A stretch of 53,200 bases of DNA, filler included, from Corallochytrium limacisporum Hawaii (taxonomy: Eukaryota; Protista; Pluriformea), in the NCBI GenBank assembly GCA_002811645.1. It is 3 parts of 3 records of this genome, joined end to end, with 100 filler letters (N's around TTAATTAATTAA, not from the genome) between each part and the next. Parts side by side here need not be neighbours in the genome. Positions count along the whole stretch, not along the records: positions 42,283 to 53,200 come from PDIP01000093.1; 2 more parts are not named here. One strand, written 5' to 3'. Both the position numbers and the translations under genes were made by a program. Under the pieces are notes generated by a model. That model saw only the letters and a list, made by a program, of their open reading frames with translations. It ran no database searches and was not told where the DNA came from. Shown here in pieces: positions 42,283-53,200 of the stretch (position 1 is the stretch's first letter; each line of letters opens with the position of its first letter).

Positions 42283-42540
42283 CAGGCATCCCGATGAAAA
42301 AATGGCAAAAGTGGAGGGCGATAATTGAAACTAAGGCAAGTCTGAGATCCGGTATATCGAAACATTGCGGCGCCTGGGGGATCAGTCTTACACATGATAG
42401 CCATAACGCTGCCACAGCATGGAGCAGCTGAAAATCGTCCAAGGACTTAATGAATATCTAGTGTATTGGCAAAGCAATAGAATCAGATGCAAATTAGACG
42501 CATTTGGTCACCAACTGCCATCGCAGTGAGACGGAGAAAT

Positions 42541-43431
42541 TCACTTCAATGGCGAAAAGTCTAGCGGCTCCAAGATGGTAGATTGCATGCCCTCGATCAA
42601 TGGTACGGTGCGGTACACGACCTGGGGCCATGTCTCAAACTCCCACATCGCATCACGCAGTTGCTTTCGTTTCTCCAGATCTGGGTAACCCCACATATGA
42701 TAGACGTGGTTCATGGTACCCAGTTGGCTGAACCACGCTCCAACTGCTGTGCCGAGCTCTCTGCGGATATCAATGCCCTTTCGCCAGTGGTGCTCCCAGT
42801 CTAGTATCTTGCCGGACTGTACGTGGTAATCTCGCAATTCATAGACACCATTCGAACCACTCTGCAGAACAGGGAGGAAGTTGAAGGCTAGCAGAATCGT
42901 TCTCTCTCGCTTGTTCAAACGTTTCATGACATCTTTGCGGAATTTCCTGTATAGATCACTTTTAGTGGTAACTTGAAGATGATGATCTAAAGTTTTGTAA
43001 GCACCATCATGCTGGATCAAATAAATCACCCGGTCGAGGTCTCCTGTGGCACTCGTGAATGCTCCCAACAACTTGCTCCGTGACTCTTGCGGATACAAGC
43101 CTGGTACATAATCACCAACAATATCCATGTACTCGTCATACTCACTGGGTTTGACGTAGTGTTCAATATATTCCCACACTGCGCCTTCATATGAAACCAT
43201 TTTTGAGTGGCTCACGTGTACAGCCTGTGTCCTGCTCACCTTTTGCCTTTCATCCGTACGGGGATGGTCTTCCCGGTCTTTTCGCAGTCTCTCTAGAATC
43301 GCAGATTTTGTGTCTGTAGATTCGCCTTGTGAAAGCTTCAAGTTTGTATGGAAGTTTACAGAAAGCCGTGGCAACACCACCAGCCGAGAACTGCAAGTCC
43401 TCACGGGTAAAGAGGTAGCGTGCCTGAGCAT
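42541..43431 (-). CDS. NIPSNAP: NIPSNAP-family mitochondrial protein
   Basis: Two NIPSNAP domains (HYVKP; VYELRDY...GAWFSQLGTMNHVYHMWGYPDL...LEPLDFSPLK). ATG 43431 gives an Arg/Ser/Leu-rich transit peptide; ATG 43530 is the alternative start. Confidence 0.92.
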   Translation of the reverse strand: MLRHATSLPVRTCSSRLVVLPRLSVNFHTNLKLSQGESTDTKSAILERLRKDREDHPRTDERQKVSRTQAVHVSHSKMVSYEGAVWEYIEHYVKPSEYDEYMDIVGDYVPGLYPQESRSKLLGAFTSATGDLDRVIYLIQHDGAYKTLDHHLQVTTKSDLYRKFRKDVMKRLNKRERTILLAFNFLPVLQSGSNGVYELRDYHVQSGKILDWEHHWRKGIDIRRELGTAVGAWFSQLGTMNHVYHMWGYPDLEKRKQLRDAMWEFETWPQVVYRTVPLIEGMQSTILEPLDFSPLK

Positions 43432-43855
43432 GACTAGTATATGTTTAATTGGCTCAGAAATGGCTTGCTGATCATATTTGAAGATTTGATGGTTGAGACA
43501 GGAAGTTGAAATAGTATCAGAGGAGCTCATTGACTAAAGTGATGGAAAGAACCTTGATGCTAAATCACGACACGCACAGGTAAAGACGCGGAATTTGTCA
43601 AATGGTGTAACTACAAAGAATTCAGTGTCAGCCATCTGTTTCGGTCAGGACGCAGGCAGCGTAGGGCCCACACAGCGGACGGAAGGGCTTTACCTGAAAG
43701 TGCCAGGCGGGGAGGGGGTTCCATGTAGTAACCCGCATGCCTCTTGATAAATGTATAAGGAAGCACCCAGACTCGAGCTTCACTTGACAGCCATTAAACA
43801 ATGGAAGACAGACACATATTAGAACTCTCAAATCGTGCTTATGGTTTTCTTACCT

Positions 43856-45112
43856 TCATTGCAAACTCATTTCATGCAGATATCGCTCCCAAACAGTCAG
43901 GGATGGCACAAGAGCACTGATATCCCCAACTTGAGAGACTATGGAGGCCTCAAATGCGGCATTCCTTACGGAGGCCATGGCATGATGAACGACTAGTGTC
44001 ACGACCATCGGATTGGCGATCAATAAGGGCGTGCCTTCATTGGACAGAGCAGCCGCCTGCAAGGTCCTTTGCGCCTCTCTCTTCGAATTGTGATACCAGC
44101 CCCAAACAAGATTGAAGCCGTCCTCGTCTACGCTGTTGTCCCTTTCGACGGTAAGGAAGGGAGTGTGTATCCACTTTGCATAGTCCAGTGCAACATCGCC
44201 ATCAACACCCCGACAGTACAAGATGATCAAATTGGATTGGGCGAGACTGTCAGTGAGCTCTGTCGATATCGAGAATGTACACACCGCCACCAACACCAGG
44301 AGGTCTCGCTCACTGTCCAAAAACAGATCCATGGCATGTTGTACAGTTCTAAGCAGGCTCTCTGGAGTGTCGACCTGATCTACGAAGACTGTGGAAATTA
44401 CACCACTGTCTTGGTCACCATCACAGTCTACGCCTTGACACAGGAGGAAAGCCGTCAGAGAAGGGAATCCGACACACAGTTTCTTTGAGTCGGTTTCAAA
44501 TGCAAATCCTGTCCGCAAGAAGCTCAAACTTGCCGAGCTCTGATGTAGTAACGGTCTGTCAACAGCTGCCTGGCTTATCACAGCGAATATGTATGTTGAC
44601 ATATTCCGTTTGACATTGTGCAGTTCCCAGAATCGAGTACAGCCTCGGTTACAGGGGCTCAGGCTCTTAATTTTGGCTTTACCGCAGGCGCTGCTCGTAA
44701 TTTCGCGACAAAGAAGAAATCTTGTCAGTACCAGCCTCTTATAGTTCCGTTCAATTTGTGACTTTGCCGCTTGCGTCCTGTAGTATTTCCTCGTCTCGAT
44801 GGCTTCATAGAACGATAGAGCTCGTTCGAGATGAACACGGTCTCCAGTACTGAGTGCATAGTGTTGGTAGATCTGCCCAATTCTTGACGCAATGGCCCCA
44901 ATCTCGGCCCTTGTCAAACCATACCCTGCTGCCGACAATAGGTTGTTCCTATGCTTCTGTTGGTACTTCCACACGTCGCCGTATAGCCTGAATGCCGTGG
45001 CATATCCTGAAGCACCACGTTGATTTGCATCCCGAAGACTTTCGAAGACAGTATCAGCCGCAACGAGGAGATCATAAAACTCCTTCGCCACGGTTTCTAC
45101 CGCCTTTGTCAT
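43856..45112 (-). CDS. SCAI: SCAI-family protein (divergent)
   Basis: FESLRD...VWKYQQKHR...YGLTRAEIGAIASRIGQIYQHY...ALSFYEAIETRKYY matches the recalled SCAI N-terminal block. Start is ATG 45112 or 45154. Confidence 0.82.
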   Translation of the reverse strand: MTKAVETVAKEFYDLLVAADTVFESLRDANQRGASGYATAFRLYGDVWKYQQKHRNNLLSAAGYGLTRAEIGAIASRIGQIYQHYALSTGDRVHLERALSFYEAIETRKYYRTQAAKSQIERNYKRLVLTRFLLCREITSSACGKAKIKSLSPCNRGCTRFWELHNVKRNMSTYIFAVISQAAVDRPLLHQSSASLSFLRTGFAFETDSKKLCVGFPSLTAFLLCQGVDCDGDQDSGVISTVFVDQVDTPESLLRTVQHAMDLFLDSERDLLVLVAVCTFSISTELTDSLAQSNLIILYCRGVDGDVALDYAKWIHTPFLTVERDNSVDEDGFNLVWGWYHNSKREAQRTLQAAALSNEGTPLLIANPMVVTLVVHHAMASVRNAAFEASIVSQVGDISALVPSLTVWERYLHEMSLQ

Positions 45113-46108
45113 GACTTCCCCACCATCGTTGGATCGTTGGCAATGCCTATACATCGGCAATAACTACAGTGCAGCCGTAGTCTTGAATACCTAGCATATT
45201 AGGAATGCTTTCGGTGTCGGCGACCAGGAGACCGTACTCGGCAATTCCCGTGAACACCCAGTGAGGGAGAAAGAAGGTAAGGGGTGCCCTTCGACTCAAC
45301 CCATGGGAAGGGCTGCGATCGGGAACTCACAAATTGAGTCCGATTCCCCCTTACGTCGCTCCTTCTGCCGTCGTTTGTACGAGTTCGTGTGCGCGCTTAC
45401 TGCAACAATATGCCTGGTGGATTTTCGGCTGGCATAGTTTCCACCCTCGCTTCGTCTCATATCGCCGGCCCACAGAGAATATGTGTTTCAGACGAAAAGG
45501 ATTGGCGCCCCCGTTTTCTTGGTAGAAGCGGCTTTTTGCGTACTGCGAGATAGAGGGACGGAAGCGCTCAAAGCACCGTCAGAATTCATCGGTTCCGGCG
45601 TTCTCATATAATTGGCCGGACATTCCGCCGCTATAAAGTTGCCTGGTTAGACCACAGTCACCAAAAACAGGCCCCCCCCCCTTGCGGAGGAAGAGGGGAG
45701 GGGCGCCGGGCGCACAAACCACAGGTTGGTTAGCCTGCTGTTCTCTATTGTGCGGCTCCAACTATGGCATACCTGTGCGGGTTGCAAGGCAATCGAAATG
45801 TCAATAACGTCTGCCCAAGATGAAACTCTGACCACCCACGGCACCAAGAGGAGCAAATCACCAACGCAGACCTTTGCTGGAAATAAGCGACAAAGTGCAA
45901 AACTGCAACTGTTCTACAGCGAACGTTATGACTTCAACTGGATCAGGTATTGAGCATGCGACGTCATGCATACTAGTCGACTACGGCTGGGAGTAAACGT
46001 AGGAAAGTGATGCCAGCGACGGGGATAAGTAACAAGTAACGGAAACGACACGAAAGGGACACAGCCATGAATAGCCACAACTTAAGTCCGTAAACATTTT
46101 ACTCGCCG

Positions 46109-48040
46109 ATGAATGCGGCATCAGACGTGGAACCTGGCCTACGGATCTACTGTAGTTCGATCCAGTCAGTGCCATGGCGGCGGGAGGCTTCTTCGTCTAT
46201 AGTGGAGGTTAAGACTCTGACTAGTACTAGTCAGTCATTGCCTAATTTGCGACACTCTGCTGACGATGAGGATACTCGACAAATATCTGGATCGCCTGGT
46301 ACACAAAGGTCAGACCCAGAGCATAAATATTTGCATTCAAGAAGCGCTCGTAGGCTGACACGACTGCTGTCCAAAGTAGACAGTACGGAAAGCACTATAG
46401 ATCTAGATCTGTGCCGCAAAAGTCTCACAGACATACCGTTCAACACGATTAGCAATGATGACTGTGTTACCTTACGACTTCAGGGCAACTTCATTAGTCA
46501 ACTATCCCCGGAGGTGACTCGCCTCGGTCAGTTGAAAGTACTGCGGCTGGACAATAATCTTCTAACAGCCTTGCCGAAGGAGATTGGCCATTTGACGAAT
46601 CTGCGTCAACTGAGCATAATGGGTAATAGAATTCGGGCCTTGCCAGAGACAATGGCGAAGTTGATTTACTTGGAAATACTTGACATTAGCCACAATCAGA
46701 TTGCAACACTCGGTGAAACCATTGGTCAGCTAAGACAACTGCGGATTTTGAATGCTGAAGACAATTGCATTGATCATATCATGGAGACTGCCTTTGAGGA
46801 CTGTCATTGGCACCGCCCACTTGAACGCTTAGAAGAACTTTATCTTGGTATTAACGCATTGAATGACCTGCCCTCAAGTCTTTTCAAACTTGGGAACTTG
46901 CGAATTTTGGACGTGCATTCCAATCGTCTAGAACCCATGACGCCGTATCCGTTTGCCCAACTGACAAATTTAGTGCACCTGGATCTCTGGAGCAATCCCC
47001 AGCTAGAAATGCAGTGGCAAGAACTTCAGACCCTGTCCCTGTTACAGAAATTGAACTTAGGAAAGACAAGGACGAATGAACCGGCCGGGCTCGCGCACTT
47101 GGCCCACCTCTCGGAACTACGACTTACCTATCTGGCCATGTCTACTGTACCCGCGGCGCTGGGTGACTACCTTCCATGTATCCGCACCCTCGACCTTTCT
47201 TTCAACAAGTTGACTGAGATACCGACTGCTGTGTGTGCATTACACCACTTGGAGCGTCTGAACCTTGACAACAACATGATTCATAGGATAACCGATAGCG
47301 TGGCTTCTCTCCGCACACTACAGGTCCTGTCCTTGAGTGGCAATTGCCTAGAGTTCTTGCCTGGCACACTGTTCCAACTGTCTCAGCTTCGGGAGCTACA
47401 CATTGCCAATAACTGTCTCATGGTTATTCCTGAAGAAATTAATCGGCTGACCAACCTCAGAGCCCTGGACGTCTCTGGGAATCCCGAGCTGCGGATGCTC
47501 CCCGTTTCAGTGTGTGACCTTGAAGAATTGAGTACCGTGAATATCAATTCCTTCAGTTTCCCGGAGGGCGAAAACGGTTCCAACGGCACTGAGGTCCAGC
47601 CGTCACTGGAAGATGGCTTCAGAGTATTTTTTGGCCGAAAGGGGCTTTTTCCCAGGGTAGCTTCGGCGACAAAGTCGCCTCCGACCCTATACAATCTTTG
47701 TAAGGTAAAGGTGCATGATAGCCTGCTGCATATAGATGAAGCAGATTCTCAATCCACCGACAACAATACCAATTTCGCACTGCACGATATTCCCATTGCA
47801 GTTGCAGTGGATATACTTAGTGCCAAAGCATGTTTGCATTGCAAGAAGTGCCTCCACGCGGAAAATTGTCATCAGTTTGTCACCACAGCACACACAATGC
47901 TCTCCCGTAGGCGACATGAAGAGCGTCAAGCATATCCGTGGTTTTACTACATCTATGTGGAAAGTCACGCCTGTTCCAATTCATGCGCTAAGGCGTTAAG
48001 CCCGATCAGCGCTATATACTGCAGGTTGCAGACTGACTAA
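46109..48040 (+). CDS. Leucine-rich repeat protein with C-terminal BC-box and Cys cluster (LRR1/LRRC58-like)
   Basis: About 15 LxxLxLxxN repeats, then PPTLYNLC...DIPIAVAVDILSAKACLHC...HACSNSC. Confidence 0.85.
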   Translation: MNAASDVEPGLRIYCSSIQSVPWRREASSSIVEVKTLTSTSQSLPNLRHSADDEDTRQISGSPGTQRSDPEHKYLHSRSARRLTRLLSKVDSTESTIDLDLCRKSLTDIPFNTISNDDCVTLRLQGNFISQLSPEVTRLGQLKVLRLDNNLLTALPKEIGHLTNLRQLSIMGNRIRALPETMAKLIYLEILDISHNQIATLGETIGQLRQLRILNAEDNCIDHIMETAFEDCHWHRPLERLEELYLGINALNDLPSSLFKLGNLRILDVHSNRLEPMTPYPFAQLTNLVHLDLWSNPQLEMQWQELQTLSLLQKLNLGKTRTNEPAGLAHLAHLSELRLTYLAMSTVPAALGDYLPCIRTLDLSFNKLTEIPTAVCALHHLERLNLDNNMIHRITDSVASLRTLQVLSLSGNCLEFLPGTLFQLSQLRELHIANNCLMVIPEEINRLTNLRALDVSGNPELRMLPVSVCDLEELSTVNINSFSFPEGENGSNGTEVQPSLEDGFRVFFGRKGLFPRVASATKSPPTLYNLCKVKVHDSLLHIDEADSQSTDNNTNFALHDIPIAVAVDILSAKACLHCKKCLHAENCHQFVTTAHTMLSRRRHEERQAYPWFYYIYVESHACSNSCAKALSPISAIYCRLQTD

Positions 48041-48311
48041 TTTCCCAAATTTGTTGAAAGGGGGAAGGATTTGAATTGAATACAATTTATAGACTCCCTG
48101 TTGATTGAATTGTTGTTATATTCATGAACAATAATATTCTAGGCCATTCTTATTTGAAGTTATTTGTTTACATCCCGGGGCAATTTGCATATATACCTAG
48201 GATACGCTCCATTCAAGAATAACGAAGGAAATTAATTGGCTAATGTGCGAAGCACCATGTATTCTTTATTTTCCGAAAAGCATCGATCCCTACGCGTGAG
48301 CATGGGTCCTT

Positions 48312-50033
48312 TCACGTCGTTGAAGCCGTCTGAACAAGGGCCTTTGATGCAGGATATTGCCGTTGAGCGCTCCATACTGGTGCCGCGTGTTCGTGAATGT
48401 AGCGTTTGATGACCCAGAAATTAGGGCGAGCATCGGGATTGAACTTGCGACAACGTCGAACCAATTCGCAATAGAATTCATCTGCGCAAGTATCGGGCAT
48501 AGGATCAACTTGTCCCTTCTGAATTCTTGCGATGACTTCTTTTGTGTCTGCAATGGTATCGTAGGGGATTCGCCGGGTCATAATTTGCCATAAAATGACT
48601 CCAAAGGCGTACACATCCGATTTCGATGTACAAGGGAAGAAGTTCATGACCTCCGGGCTCCGCCATCGAGTGGACCCAAGTTTGGAGTAGTCACCAGAGT
48701 GTTCCACGTGCAACACATCTTTCATCTTTGCAATGCCAAAATCGGCAAGTTTTGGGGCCATGTTCTCGTCCAACAAAATATTTGCCGGCTTCAGGTCCCG
48801 ATGGATTACATCATAAGCATGGAGGAAACTCAAACCGCAGGCGATGTCATGTGCAAAGCTCCACATTTCTGCTGAGGTAAAGGGTTCATCCCGACGCCTG
48901 CGCAACAGAACCTCAAGGGAACCGTTCGGCATGTACTCCATGACAATATTGAGCTCTCCCTTTGGCCCAACCATCGCCCCGTACAGACTAACAATTTGGC
49001 GGTGGCGACCCATCACGTTCATTACCTTCAACTCATGCTCGAATGAACGCTTCAGGGCTGCCTGACTAGGTGCTTTTGAATCCATAAACTTTTTGACAGC
49101 GCATGGCTTGCCTCCCCATACTCCCTTGAAGACCTGTGCAAACCCACCGCGGCCGATCATCTGTTCCATCTTAATTTCATCATTCTGAATATAACGTACA
49201 TCGATGGCATCCAGTGCATCTTGCAGATTATCTTTCGCAGTGGAAGACACCTGACGCTTCTTTAGAACCTTCATGTGAAAACCATCTAGAGCCTCACGGT
49301 ATGCCAGCCAGTCCTTTTGCATCTGCTTCAATCCAGAAGTAGTGGCCATGCGAGCACTGACGTACTTCGGTAACTTGTAGCGCGGTGTGACCCTCAGTTT
49401 GATCCACGCCTCACGTACCCTGTCCAAGCTGTGGGCAAACCTCACGCTGGTGGCCCTAAGCGGAGCCTGGTTCACAAGAAGAGGATTGCTTCCCAAAATG
49501 CGCAGGATGTAACTCATACTGACTAGAGACTCTGCGATCTTGAGACGCAGTTGAGCGTCTGACCGGTCCACATCTTTTCCTGATTCTTTGTATACTTGAA
49601 TGGCCTTAAGGTCAATAGGAGTGGCGTCGACGGTGTTCTCCAATAACACATCATTGTGCTTGTCTGTCCCATACAGGGCAGCAAACAATGCCTGCATCGA
49701 ACGTGAGACTTTGTTGTATACTTGTTCTGAAGGAGCTGGCTCAATATTCGCACAGGAGCTCTGTACGTGTTCAAAGATTTCGTCCGCCCGCGCAGCAGTG
49801 GCCGTAGAATTCGTAGAATCCGCGATCAGGCTCAAGCCCGACTTTCGTGTCTCCTTGATGTTCGCGCTCGCGCCCTCATTCTGGTTACTTGTTGCATGTC
49901 GGTGACAATTTTCATCATCATTCCTATTCTGCTGACAGTCAGCGTCAACTTCTTTGTCTAATGTGACATCTTCGTCATCATTGTGAAGTTTATCCTGCAA
50001 TATTGCCTTCGGCTCTGCTACAGCTGCTGCCAT
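48312..50033 (-). CDS. TKL-group Ser/Thr kinase with N-terminal helical bundle
   Basis: GRGGFAQV, AVKK, IHRDLKPANILL, DFG, RWRSPE and KSDVYAFGVILWQI. First ATG at 50033. Confidence 0.92.
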   Translation of the reverse strand: MAAAVAEPKAILQDKLHNDDEDVTLDKEVDADCQQNRNDDENCHRHATSNQNEGASANIKETRKSGLSLIADSTNSTATAARADEIFEHVQSSCANIEPAPSEQVYNKVSRSMQALFAALYGTDKHNDVLLENTVDATPIDLKAIQVYKESGKDVDRSDAQLRLKIAESLVSMSYILRILGSNPLLVNQAPLRATSVRFAHSLDRVREAWIKLRVTPRYKLPKYVSARMATTSGLKQMQKDWLAYREALDGFHMKVLKKRQVSSTAKDNLQDALDAIDVRYIQNDEIKMEQMIGRGGFAQVFKGVWGGKPCAVKKFMDSKAPSQAALKRSFEHELKVMNVMGRHRQIVSLYGAMVGPKGELNIVMEYMPNGSLEVLLRRRRDEPFTSAEMWSFAHDIACGLSFLHAYDVIHRDLKPANILLDENMAPKLADFGIAKMKDVLHVEHSGDYSKLGSTRWRSPEVMNFFPCTSKSDVYAFGVILWQIMTRRIPYDTIADTKEVIARIQKGQVDPMPDTCADEFYCELVRRCRKFNPDARPNFWVIKRYIHEHAAPVWSAQRQYPASKALVQTASTT

Positions 50034-52045
50034 TGTAGCGATCACGCACAACAGGTCTACAATGTCTGTCAAAAATTCTCGAACTTGATTTCCTTGTGCA
50101 GATCTGGTCCCGGCTGAAAGGTTATGGCTTCAGTCCCATTTTGGCCATATTGCGGTGTTGATAACATGCATAGGGAACGCTTACGTTCTGGTAATGCGTA
50201 ACCCGCCGCGCCGATTCTGAAACACCATGCACCCCATTCAGAAAGTGTAAAGAAAACTATCCGAAACAACTGCACTAATAAATTTGTGTAGGGATCTGTT
50301 AGGGTGTACTAGCACTGTGTTGGTGTGGTTGTTCGATATGCAGCAAAGTCGTACAGGAGGGACCCTAGATGTGAATCATGAGGGGAACGCGGTCAGAGTG
50401 TCATCAACCACCATTTCAGTGCGTGCGTACACGCCACCTTGCCCACCAGGGAAACGCTACCAAACTCTTACTCATAAGCACATCACAAGTAGTGTGCGAG
50501 GACACACCATATACTGCATACCGCAATCTCTGAGTCCGTCGCCGTTTTTGCGGAACACACGTTTTTGTTTCCTCTCCCAGTTTCTGCGCTCTCCATTCCA
50601 GTTCCATTGAAAGAGGGTTCGATTTCAACATCTCCCTTTCCCCCTGCTTCGTTCTGCATGGATCTTCCTGATAAGTAAGGAAACGACGGGCTCTGGGTTG
50701 GGTTTGAGGTCTACAGCGTATACTTCTGGGATTCGAACGAGGGCCTGTGCAATTGGTCTGTCTGGTTATGGTGTCGATTCGGTTCTTGATCTCCTTGACG
50801 GTTACACAGTTGCACACATCAGATGTAAAGGCGGTGGACCTCGTTTGACGTCGAACTGAACGGAGCCTGAAAACAAGAATTACAACGGCCAGATGTACGT
50901 CCCGTCAGCGGAGTTTCCTCCTGTCGAGTATTTGTTTTATTTGTCACATGGCTGGTTGTTCAAGCGCTAAAGGAGTCGCCTGACGAAGTGAGGTGCGAGG
51001 GTAGCAACTTAGAGCATTCGTACTCTCCAACGAGTTGACTGGAGAGCTTGGGTTGGGTGTCTCTCCACTGGCTCCACCCCACCCACTCTCTCGCGCTTTC
51101 AATCTATAGTCGATTAGCCAGAGGGCACACAGCACGGGGGGTGGGAACAATTCGTAGAGAGACTATGTGACAATTGATTGCTTCAGGTGGTTTGGCTATC
51201 CCCGGCGTGAAAGGTGAAATTGTTTGTCGCCGTGTCCCCCACCTCCCCTTCGTCCTTTGGCTGGATATCTCTATAGTGGCTGGACGTGAAAGCTGTTTCA
51301 TCCGCTGCCCACAACGTTTCACAAGGGGAACCATCGTGGGGACATATTCTCGTGCAAAAGCCCAACTGCTTCGAAATCATGTGCACTTAGATAATATGGT
51401 ACCCGGTTTAATATGTGGCCGGGTCACCTTGAGATAAGAATATGCGGGAAGGCGGACGAGGGATCGAGCCGGGAGAACACCCACGGCCGTCGAAAATGGA
51501 ACCCGCTGCACTGGTCGATGATACTCAACCCACAGGAGTGGCGGTTTCTTGTGCTTAGGCAGGGTTGTGTCAAATTGGCGAACTCGAATGCCGTGTACAA
51601 TAGTTTACACAGAGAATGGAGGCATGTCCAGTCTAGCTTTCGCCAACGTTCACCCTGCAAGCAATTGATGATGGTCGGCGCAGGGCGATTACTGTCTGGA
51701 GATGCAAATCTAGTTGAATTCCTTTATGTATCAAGTGCAATCCACAAAACCATAGTCCTGGTGATTGATGACATGTTGTGAGTGCGTGTATACATGAATG
51801 GATGCTGTGCATTGTGTGGATGTTTGATGAACGGCGCTGTGATCGGCTTGTGCCTGTCTGTCGTTCTCTCACTTGAAGCCTTTCTTGTCCACGGGCAAAT
51901 AATCCACGTATTGATTAGAAATTCAGGCGCGAAATTTTCGGCTTACTCCCCCACCATCGGGGTGATTCTGGTCACTCTGTCGAGGATGCAGACGCAACGC
52001 CCCGAGCTTGGGAGGCAAGTTGACTTGTTTAAATGCTCTGAAATA

Positions 52046-52522
52046 CTAATGAGTATTCCCTTGCTCGAGTAGAGGAGAAATTGCGTGATGAAGAACCAGC
52101 ATCATCTGTTGCAATTTTGCAACATCCTCCTTCACAGTGGCTAGATCTGTGTTGTCAACATTTCTCTTCCTCGTCAAGGGCACTGAATAATCTTGCTGCC
52201 GGCCCAATTTGTAGTTCTTCACCGCAGTGTTACTCAAATAGAAAGCATGCTTTCCGTTTTCACCAAGTTGAGGTGCATATAATCCAAGTTCGGCGTTGCA
52301 GATAGCACAATTGAGGGGAATACATAACTGTCCCTCCAAATATGCATCGCGATCACTGGGGCACCGAATTTGGCCCCCCCGGCATTCAGTTGCTTCAGTA
52401 ACGGTATTGAGGATCACCCACTCCTCTCCGGAAGCAGCGATGGGCTGCAATTTTGCCGTAGAATCGCCAATAAGTGCACCGCACTGGCTACAAAGATAGA
52501 CGCCCGCCTCGATGGTCATCAT
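52046..52522 (-). CDS. MIS18: MIS18-family centromere licensing protein (Yippee-like Zn domain plus C-terminal helix)
   Basis: VYLCSQCGALIGDS...LNCAICNAELG...FYLSNTAVKNYKLG followed by the amphipathic helix VKEDVAKLQQMMLVLH. Confidence 0.78.
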   Translation of the reverse strand: MMTIEAGVYLCSQCGALIGDSTAKLQPIAASGEEWVILNTVTEATECRGGQIRCPSDRDAYLEGQLCIPLNCAICNAELGLYAPQLGENGKHAFYLSNTAVKNYKLGRQQDYSVPLTRKRNVDNTDLATVKEDVAKLQQMMLVLHHAISPLLEQGNTH

Positions 52523-53200
52523 TGGTCCGTCTGCATTCGCGGCCGATAATTCTCGTGCTATTCTTCAAATTGATCGTTTGGATCTTTTTATAACAATTTG
52601 GTTAAACTTATCATCAATTACTGTACTTCCTTACTGAAATCAAAATATTGCTTGTGTCGTAGAGGCTAACCCATTTTCCTAACAGCAGGCTTGAGCTGAA
52701 CTGGAGGCTGGACCAGAAGGGGATCCGAAGAGAGGGGCAGGTGACCTCACGCCCCAGCAAGGGAGTGAAGCGTAGGTCTGCGGGTAAGGGGGTAGCGGAA
52801 TTGCCAGCAGCCCGCCCCACCATCCTCCCCAACCACCTAGGCCTCTTCCAGGTACCTTTCGTCACTGCCAGCCACTTGGACTTCGCTGGTAGCGAAAGTA
52901 CCGAAAACGCCACGAGCAGCGGTTAGCCGGTCCGGAGCCACCTTCTGCCTCCTCCCTGCTCCCCCCCCTTCTAGCTCAATGGCATATGGTAGTGGTAGTA
53001 TGGGTACTGTTGACATTCGTCGTCTCGGGCGGAATGGCTGGCACAGTAGTGAAAGTGCTGATGCGCAGGAAATTTAGCGAAACGGGGCCCACTCCCCTTC
53101 TTGATCCCTCCGAGGTGGTCGTGCCATTACCACCCTCTGTCTGGGAATATTGTATCAAATCTACTCTTTTTGATTTAGCTCTGCCGTCGCTTGGGAGAGC

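Follow-up and report, generated by a model that had tools for sequence, protein, structure and literature searches.

The window analysed here, 53,200 nucleotides (filler included) from Corallochytrium limacisporum Hawaii (GCA_002811645.1), carries on its minus strand, at positions 48312-50033, a gene for a 573-aa protein in which a kinase domain follows a predicted helical module. Judged by its motifs, the protein is a catalytically competent Ser/Thr kinase of the TKL group. We tentatively read residues ~104-277, with the balance just short of even, as a very divergent four-helix bundle plus brace of the MLKL_N/HeLo type; by modelling, an MLKL-type fold class for this module is weakly indicated. 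The analysis covered the piece at 42283-53200 (PDIP01000093.1), and all coordinates are those of the window, whereas residue numbers are those of the 573-aa protein. The features of the gene are as follows.

48312-50033, minus strand: whole coding sequence with its stop codon (48312-48314), single exon, encoding the 573-aa database protein P0001.
49797-50033, minus strand: residues 1-79, acidic tail rich in D, N, E and A by composition, with a predicted local distance difference test (pLDDT) mostly below 50 in the whole-protein model.
49749-49802, minus strand: residues 78-95, predicted helix alpha0 (model helix 2-19), outside the stretch aligned with MLKL.
49671-49724, minus strand: residues 104-121, candidate bundle helix alpha1, strongly amphipathic (model helix 28-45).
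49566-49670, minus strand: residues 122-156, two short predicted helices in an acidic insert of low confidence (pLDDT below 50).
49260-49565, minus strand: residues 157-258, predicted bundle core of three long basic helices (model and composition).
49203-49244, minus strand: residues 264-277, short amphipathic linker helix (model helix 188-201), in a brace-like position before the kinase N-lobe.
48402-49175, minus strand: residues 287-544, TKL-type protein kinase domain (Pfam, PDB matches and motifs).
48315-48401, minus strand: residues 545-573, short C-terminal tail without any match.

The kinase domain matched the Pfam families PF07714 PK_Tyr_Ser-Thr (9.1e-57; 192.7 bits vs a cut-off of 23.1) and PF00069 Pkinase (8.9e-48; 163.4 bits vs a cut-off of 31.7), as well as PDB kinases with E values down to 6e-51. 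It contains a G-loop, GRGGFA, at residues 294-299, Lys314 within CAVK, HRD at 411-413 as part of HRDLKPAN (411-418), DFG at 431-433 and SPE, an APE-type motif, at 459-461; the catalytic loop, HRDLKxxN, is of the Ser/Thr type, and the activation loop (residues 434-458) offers Ser, Thr and Tyr candidates. The Pfam match and the presence of the G-loop, Lys, HRD and DFG motifs bear out the original prediction of a catalytically intact kinase and, because all these motifs are intact, the protein cannot be classed, on its sequence, as an MLKL pseudokinase. A search with the full-length protein retrieved matches to the kinase domain only, reaching about 35% identity, and no orthologue exceeds that level; named kinases at 30-38% identity include RLK-Pelle-DLSV, G-lectin and cysteine-rich receptor kinases, and the top two matches score high through several kinase domains each. 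Ten matches similar in length to the protein lack an MLKL_N domain.

The N-terminal 286 residues are genuine coding sequence, because they show the codon bias of the right frame over an improbable stop-free length. The reading frame is uninterrupted for 586 codons (48312..50072, minus strand); it is open from 50072, and its first ATG, at 50033, gives the 573-aa product (codons at 50033..48315), identical to P0001. Using a codon-usage log-likelihood trained on four neighbouring genes, we obtained +16.2 for residues 1-79 and +25.5 for residues 80-286 in the annotated frame, the only one with positive values (the others ranged from -8 to -42). The GC content of the N-terminal half at the first, second and third codon positions (0.57/0.38/0.52) follows the same pattern as in the kinase domain and the four neighbouring genes, and the chance of 286 codons without a stop at the local base composition is 9.5e-7.

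In the predicted arrangement, helices within residues 104-258 are followed by the linker helix at 264-277 and by the kinase from residue 287. The acidic tail (residues 1-79; net charge -8, isoelectric point (pI) 4.55, grand average of hydropathy -1.02) is probably disordered. The predicted bundle is basic (net charge +10), with charges of +2, +4 and +5 for the core helices 157-182, 190-215 and 221-258. Helices 104-121 and 264-277 have hydrophobic moments of 0.48 (shuffle P=0.009) and 0.47 (P=0.018), respectively, and the long helices are not amphipathic across their full length; no transmembrane-like segment was found in the N-terminal half (maximum KD19 1.25). The segment that had been proposed as a four-helix bundle was located at residues 138-257 (nt ~49263-49622; pI 10.2), with ~137 residues ahead of it, in agreement with the ~135 announced. 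Only three long helices are predicted inside it; the fourth bundle helix of the model (104-121) lies upstream. The N-terminal half, for which no homologues were found, was modelled with AlphaFold2 (AF2) from the single sequence. The top model for residues 77-292 reached a pLDDT of 60.4 and a predicted template modelling score (pTM) of 0.64; its best part is residues 157-258, with a pLDDT of 61-80 per 10-residue block and above 70 for residues 187-256.

Two weak lines of evidence, added to the modest prior that we took as a starting point for a ~180-aa helical module directly upstream of a TKL kinase, raise the probability of an MLKL_N-type bundle. The first is fold alignment of the model. The list is headed by four unrelated structures, namely a Gamma-tubulin complex protein (rank 1, score 11.7), HIP1R THATCH (rank 2, 9.9), a de novo design (rank 3, 9.9) and CAMP factor (rank 4, 9.9), followed by the human MLKL N-domain 6ux8_A (rank 5, 9.7; root-mean-square deviation 3.3 Å over 135 aligned residues of a 152-residue chain); AtMLKL3 6ka4_A appears at rank 11 (9.0; 150 residues aligned, chain 1-184). 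Both MLKL alignments begin at model residue 26-27, after alpha0, and extend to 208-216, that is, over protein residues ~103-292 from the candidate alpha1 through the linker helix, covering ~88-92% of the crystal-structure chains. For comparison, the superposition of AtMLKL3 on the HeLo domains of mammalian MLKL has a deviation of 3.7-4.0 Å (10.1101/681015). The second line is a language-model feature search of residues 100-282 against named ESM Atlas clusters. Nearly all of the matches listed belong to MLKL_N, MCAfunc or RPW8 family sets, with scores of 0.75-0.82; these include MLKL_N clusters from Oomycota (0.82 and 0.80) and Mucoromycota (0.79) and plant clusters with MLKL_N, MCAfunc or RPW8 (0.75-0.78), the exceptions being one unnamed Basidiomycota cluster and one TNFAIP8 cluster. 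By the calibration of the tool, a score below 0.9 with 150-155 shared features counts as a lead only, one third of shuffled proteins reaching 0.8 and one third also giving a coherent top ten. The feature result nevertheless carries some weight, because it points to the same family as the fold alignment and because this family naturally precedes a TKL-type kinase fold.

Other results weigh against an MLKL_N-type bundle. Pfam searches with nine segments spanning residues 1-300 gave no match to MLKL_N (PF22215), HeLo, Helo_like_N, RPW8 or DUF1221 at E≤10. This is weak negative evidence, because only 10-62% of the members of the MLKL_N-carrying Atlas clusters reach the Pfam model; moreover, the HMMER filters discard most matches above E ~0.1. 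Foldseek retrieved nothing from the PDB at E≤1e-3, its top, non-significant rows being Borrelia BBH37, THATCH, talin rods and a chemoreceptor four-helix bundle, and the Atlas fold search gave no TM score of at least 0.5. The scores of the MLKL entries in the fold alignment tie with those of many unrelated or designed bundles, within the noise range that the tool states for helical proteins. The model itself is not robust, as the remaining four models had pLDDT values of 52, 41, 36 and 34. Lastly, the bundle is internal, with ~103 residues (the acidic tail and helix 78-95) ahead of the candidate alpha1. It is the negative hidden Markov model result, this internal position and the unstable model that lower the probability.

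At the level of sequence, the N-terminal half is a complete orphan. Its only Pfam row was a sub-threshold match of a helical segment (residues ~204-249) to LprI (PF07007; E 0.012-0.04, 15-16 bits vs a cut-off of 22), which we rejected. Searches with phmmer of the N-terminal region against all PDB chains gave nothing at E≤10, and an exhaustive phmmer search of residues 77-287 against 1.84 billion (1.84e9) representatives returned only the protein itself and P0002, a bacterial TPR-repeat protein (39 residues matched, E 1.6e-4) that was discarded as a repeat-driven chance match. Likewise, only the protein itself was returned by a word-index search with residues 125-290, a metagenome tblastn scan with the N-terminal half found no relative, and an unfiltered feature search of the Atlas gave no usable match. 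Poor sampling of the organism probably explains part of this orphan status; that sampling is indeed very poor is indicated by the neighbouring NIPSNAP gene, whose search also returns only itself. The original prediction had been built on a helix-by-helix resemblance to the MLKL N-domain, and this proved to be at chance level: local alignment of the three MLKL fragments cited in that prediction with residues 77-287 scored 18, 19 and 14, compared with shuffled means of 18.0, 19.9 and 15.3, and the observed scores were reached by fractions of 0.51, 0.63 and 0.73 of the shuffles. What points to an MLKL-like bundle are structural and language-model matches that are weak but converge.

The probabilities that we attach to this and to the alternative readings are matters of judgement and were not computed. 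In the first alternative, which could well be correct, the helical region is a lineage-specific orphan module for regulation, oligomerisation or targeting without any evolutionary or functional link to MLKL or HeLo; the protein would then be a TKL kinase of ordinary signalling, and the generic geometry of up-down bundles would account for the MLKL matches. Compared with generic TKL kinases of protists and plants, the protein has a kinase domain that shares 30-38% identity with many TKL, RLK or Raf-like members and an accessory region that is an orphan. In favour of this alternative are the lack of sequence or profile relatives of the N-terminal half, the chance-level resemblance to the cited MLKL fragments, the ties with unrelated or designed bundles, the negative Foldseek and Atlas fold searches, feature scores in the chance-or-distant range and the ~100 residues ahead of the bundle. 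Single-sequence AF2, in addition, tends toward idealised bundles, which is consistent with the many de novo designs among the matches. On the other hand, fold alignment and language-model features, which are different in kind, pick the same family, the alignments span 88-92% of the MLKL crystal-structure chains, and the module is placed relative to the TKL kinase as in the MLKL family.

If the MLKL_N-type reading holds, the protein might work in a way analogous to that of MLKL and AtMLKL, its bundle being kept inactive by the brace and the kinase domain. Phosphorylation of the activation loop (434-458), possibly autophosphorylation, or oligomerisation would then release the bundle; because the kinase is intact, phosphorylation could occur in cis or in trans. 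The freed basic bundle would bind acidic membrane lipids, leading to signalling or permeabilisation, and the acidic N-terminal tail could further mask the basic bundle electrostatically. A stronger version, which we consider unlikely, is that of a deeply divergent MLKL-type executioner that has drifted past profile detection, in which a permeabilising four-helix bundle would combine with an active kinase of its own and with an acidic pro-segment at the N-terminus into a one-protein, self-licensing switch for regulated necrosis.

It is quite improbable that the module belongs to another known bundle class represented among the matches and serves as a protein-protein docking domain, whether a FAT, talin-rod or THATCH-like adaptor, a BAR-like membrane-curvature module or a relative of pore formers such as CAMP factor or ClyA: none of these classes outranks the rest, the FAT/talin/THATCH, BAR, CAMP factor and ClyA families gave no Pfam match, and the Atlas feature neighbours, bar the one TNFAIP8 row, are not of these classes. 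Finally, that the mature protein lacks a folded domain in residues 1-286, because translation starts at an internal Met (e.g. Met113, Met229 or Met289) or because they are largely disordered, is hardly credible: no homologue supports the annotated start, single-sequence AF2 of the whole protein gave a pLDDT of only 35 without recovering the kinase fold itself, and a neighbouring gene has a database protein shorter than its open reading frame (ORF), but the frame-0 codon bias and the codon-position GC pattern run through residues 1-286, so long an open frame has P ~1e-6 by chance, the database protein begins at the same ATG, and the N-terminal region modelled alone reaches a pTM of 0.64.

Should the MLKL_N-type reading hold, the architecture would most likely be, by analogy, that of the plant MLKL_NTD-kinase fusions (Pm13 type) and not that of vertebrate MLKL. 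The premise that the MLKL bundle pairs only with a pseudokinase is outdated, as wheat Pm13 and the fungal HELL-kinases counter it. Pm13 consists of MLKL_NTD, brace and a kinase in which every key catalytic residue is present (PMC10951266, PMC11297308), and hundreds of MLKL_NTD-kinase proteins have been retrieved from Poaceae and Arabidopsis (PMC10951266; also PMC11297308). Pm13/AelMLKL, from wheat/Aegilops, and the protist protein as modelled would share a helical bundle in the N-terminal part, followed by a brace and, C-terminally, a catalytically intact kinase of the TKL / RLK-Pelle-like type. The MLKL_NTD models of CDD/Pfam recognise the N-domain of Pm13 but not that of the protist protein, which stems from a unicellular lineage not sampled so far and has two additions, an acidic stretch of ~100 aa at the N-terminus and 35 aa inserted behind the first helix of the bundle. 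In contrast, vertebrate MLKL (PDB 6zvo, 6ux8, 2msv) and Arabidopsis AtMLKL1-3 (6ka4) are pseudokinases without phosphoryl-transfer residues (10.1101/681015), whereas in the protist kinase the G-loop, Lys, HRD and DFG are all kept; sequence similarity to these proteins is not detectable, and the protist bundle is not the N-terminal-most element. The fungal HeLo/HELL (HeLo-like) domains are helical membrane-targeting bundles, some HELL domains being fused to kinase or pseudokinase domains (PMC12881547), and the family is notoriously divergent, its members often being recognised by modelling alone. The protist protein differs from them in having no Pfam HeLo or Helo_like_N match, no terminal position for its N-terminal helix and no evident amyloid or prion-forming motif.

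A convergent gene whose stop codon is 271 bp from that of the kinase gene encodes a 643-aa leucine-rich-repeat (LRR) protein (46109-48040, plus strand; LRR_8, 2.3e-39), with repeats at residues ~110-480, ~100 aa N-terminal to them, and a Cys/His-rich C-terminal part of ~150 aa without Pfam match. An LRR gene beside a possible cell-death-type kinase is suggestive, although adjacency of eukaryotic genes is weak evidence. Further along, a 434-aa ORF (43856-45160, minus strand; TTG-initiated in a mechanical ORF list) matches SCAI over its first ~150 residues (6.2e-27; profile positions 2-124 of 529), with no match for the remainder; either the protein is SCAI-like but very divergent, or the gene model is incomplete. 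Between the divergently oriented SCAI-like and LRR genes, the intergenic region includes a local GC maximum (45283-45782; 0.556 vs ~0.49 elsewhere) that may be a shared promoter region. The NIPSNAP-domain ORF (42541-43530, minus strand) has 329 aa; because its database protein is shorter, with 219 aa (67% of the ORF), its annotated start is an internal Met, and the search found no other relative with shared 5-residue words. On the other side, ~2 kb (50073-52045) separate the start of the kinase gene from a Yippee/Mis18-like gene (52046-52522, minus strand), far more than is seen between other genes of the piece (~270-950 bp). This region has no ORF of more than 133 aa on either strand and no tRNA, Rfam match or tandem repeat, the scans of the whole piece being equally empty; a non-coding gene or one with introns may lie in it.

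Intact kinases paired with an MLKL-type bundle are already known from Pm13 and the fungal HELL-kinases, and the protein would be, at best, a new, extremely divergent example of a known architecture, set apart by its unusual N-terminal extension. The evidence is only suggestive, and we regard the protein as a lead and not as a discovery. If the reading is true, the bundle-brace-kinase architecture would reach a protist lineage so thinly sampled that no close relative was found for any of its proteins searched. This would bear on a debated point, the ancient or convergent origin of MLKL-like architectures in animals, plants and fungi, the plant and animal MLKLs having been argued to be convergent (10.1101/681015). 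It would also provide an active-kinase example from among unicellular organisms, in which little is understood of regulated cell death.
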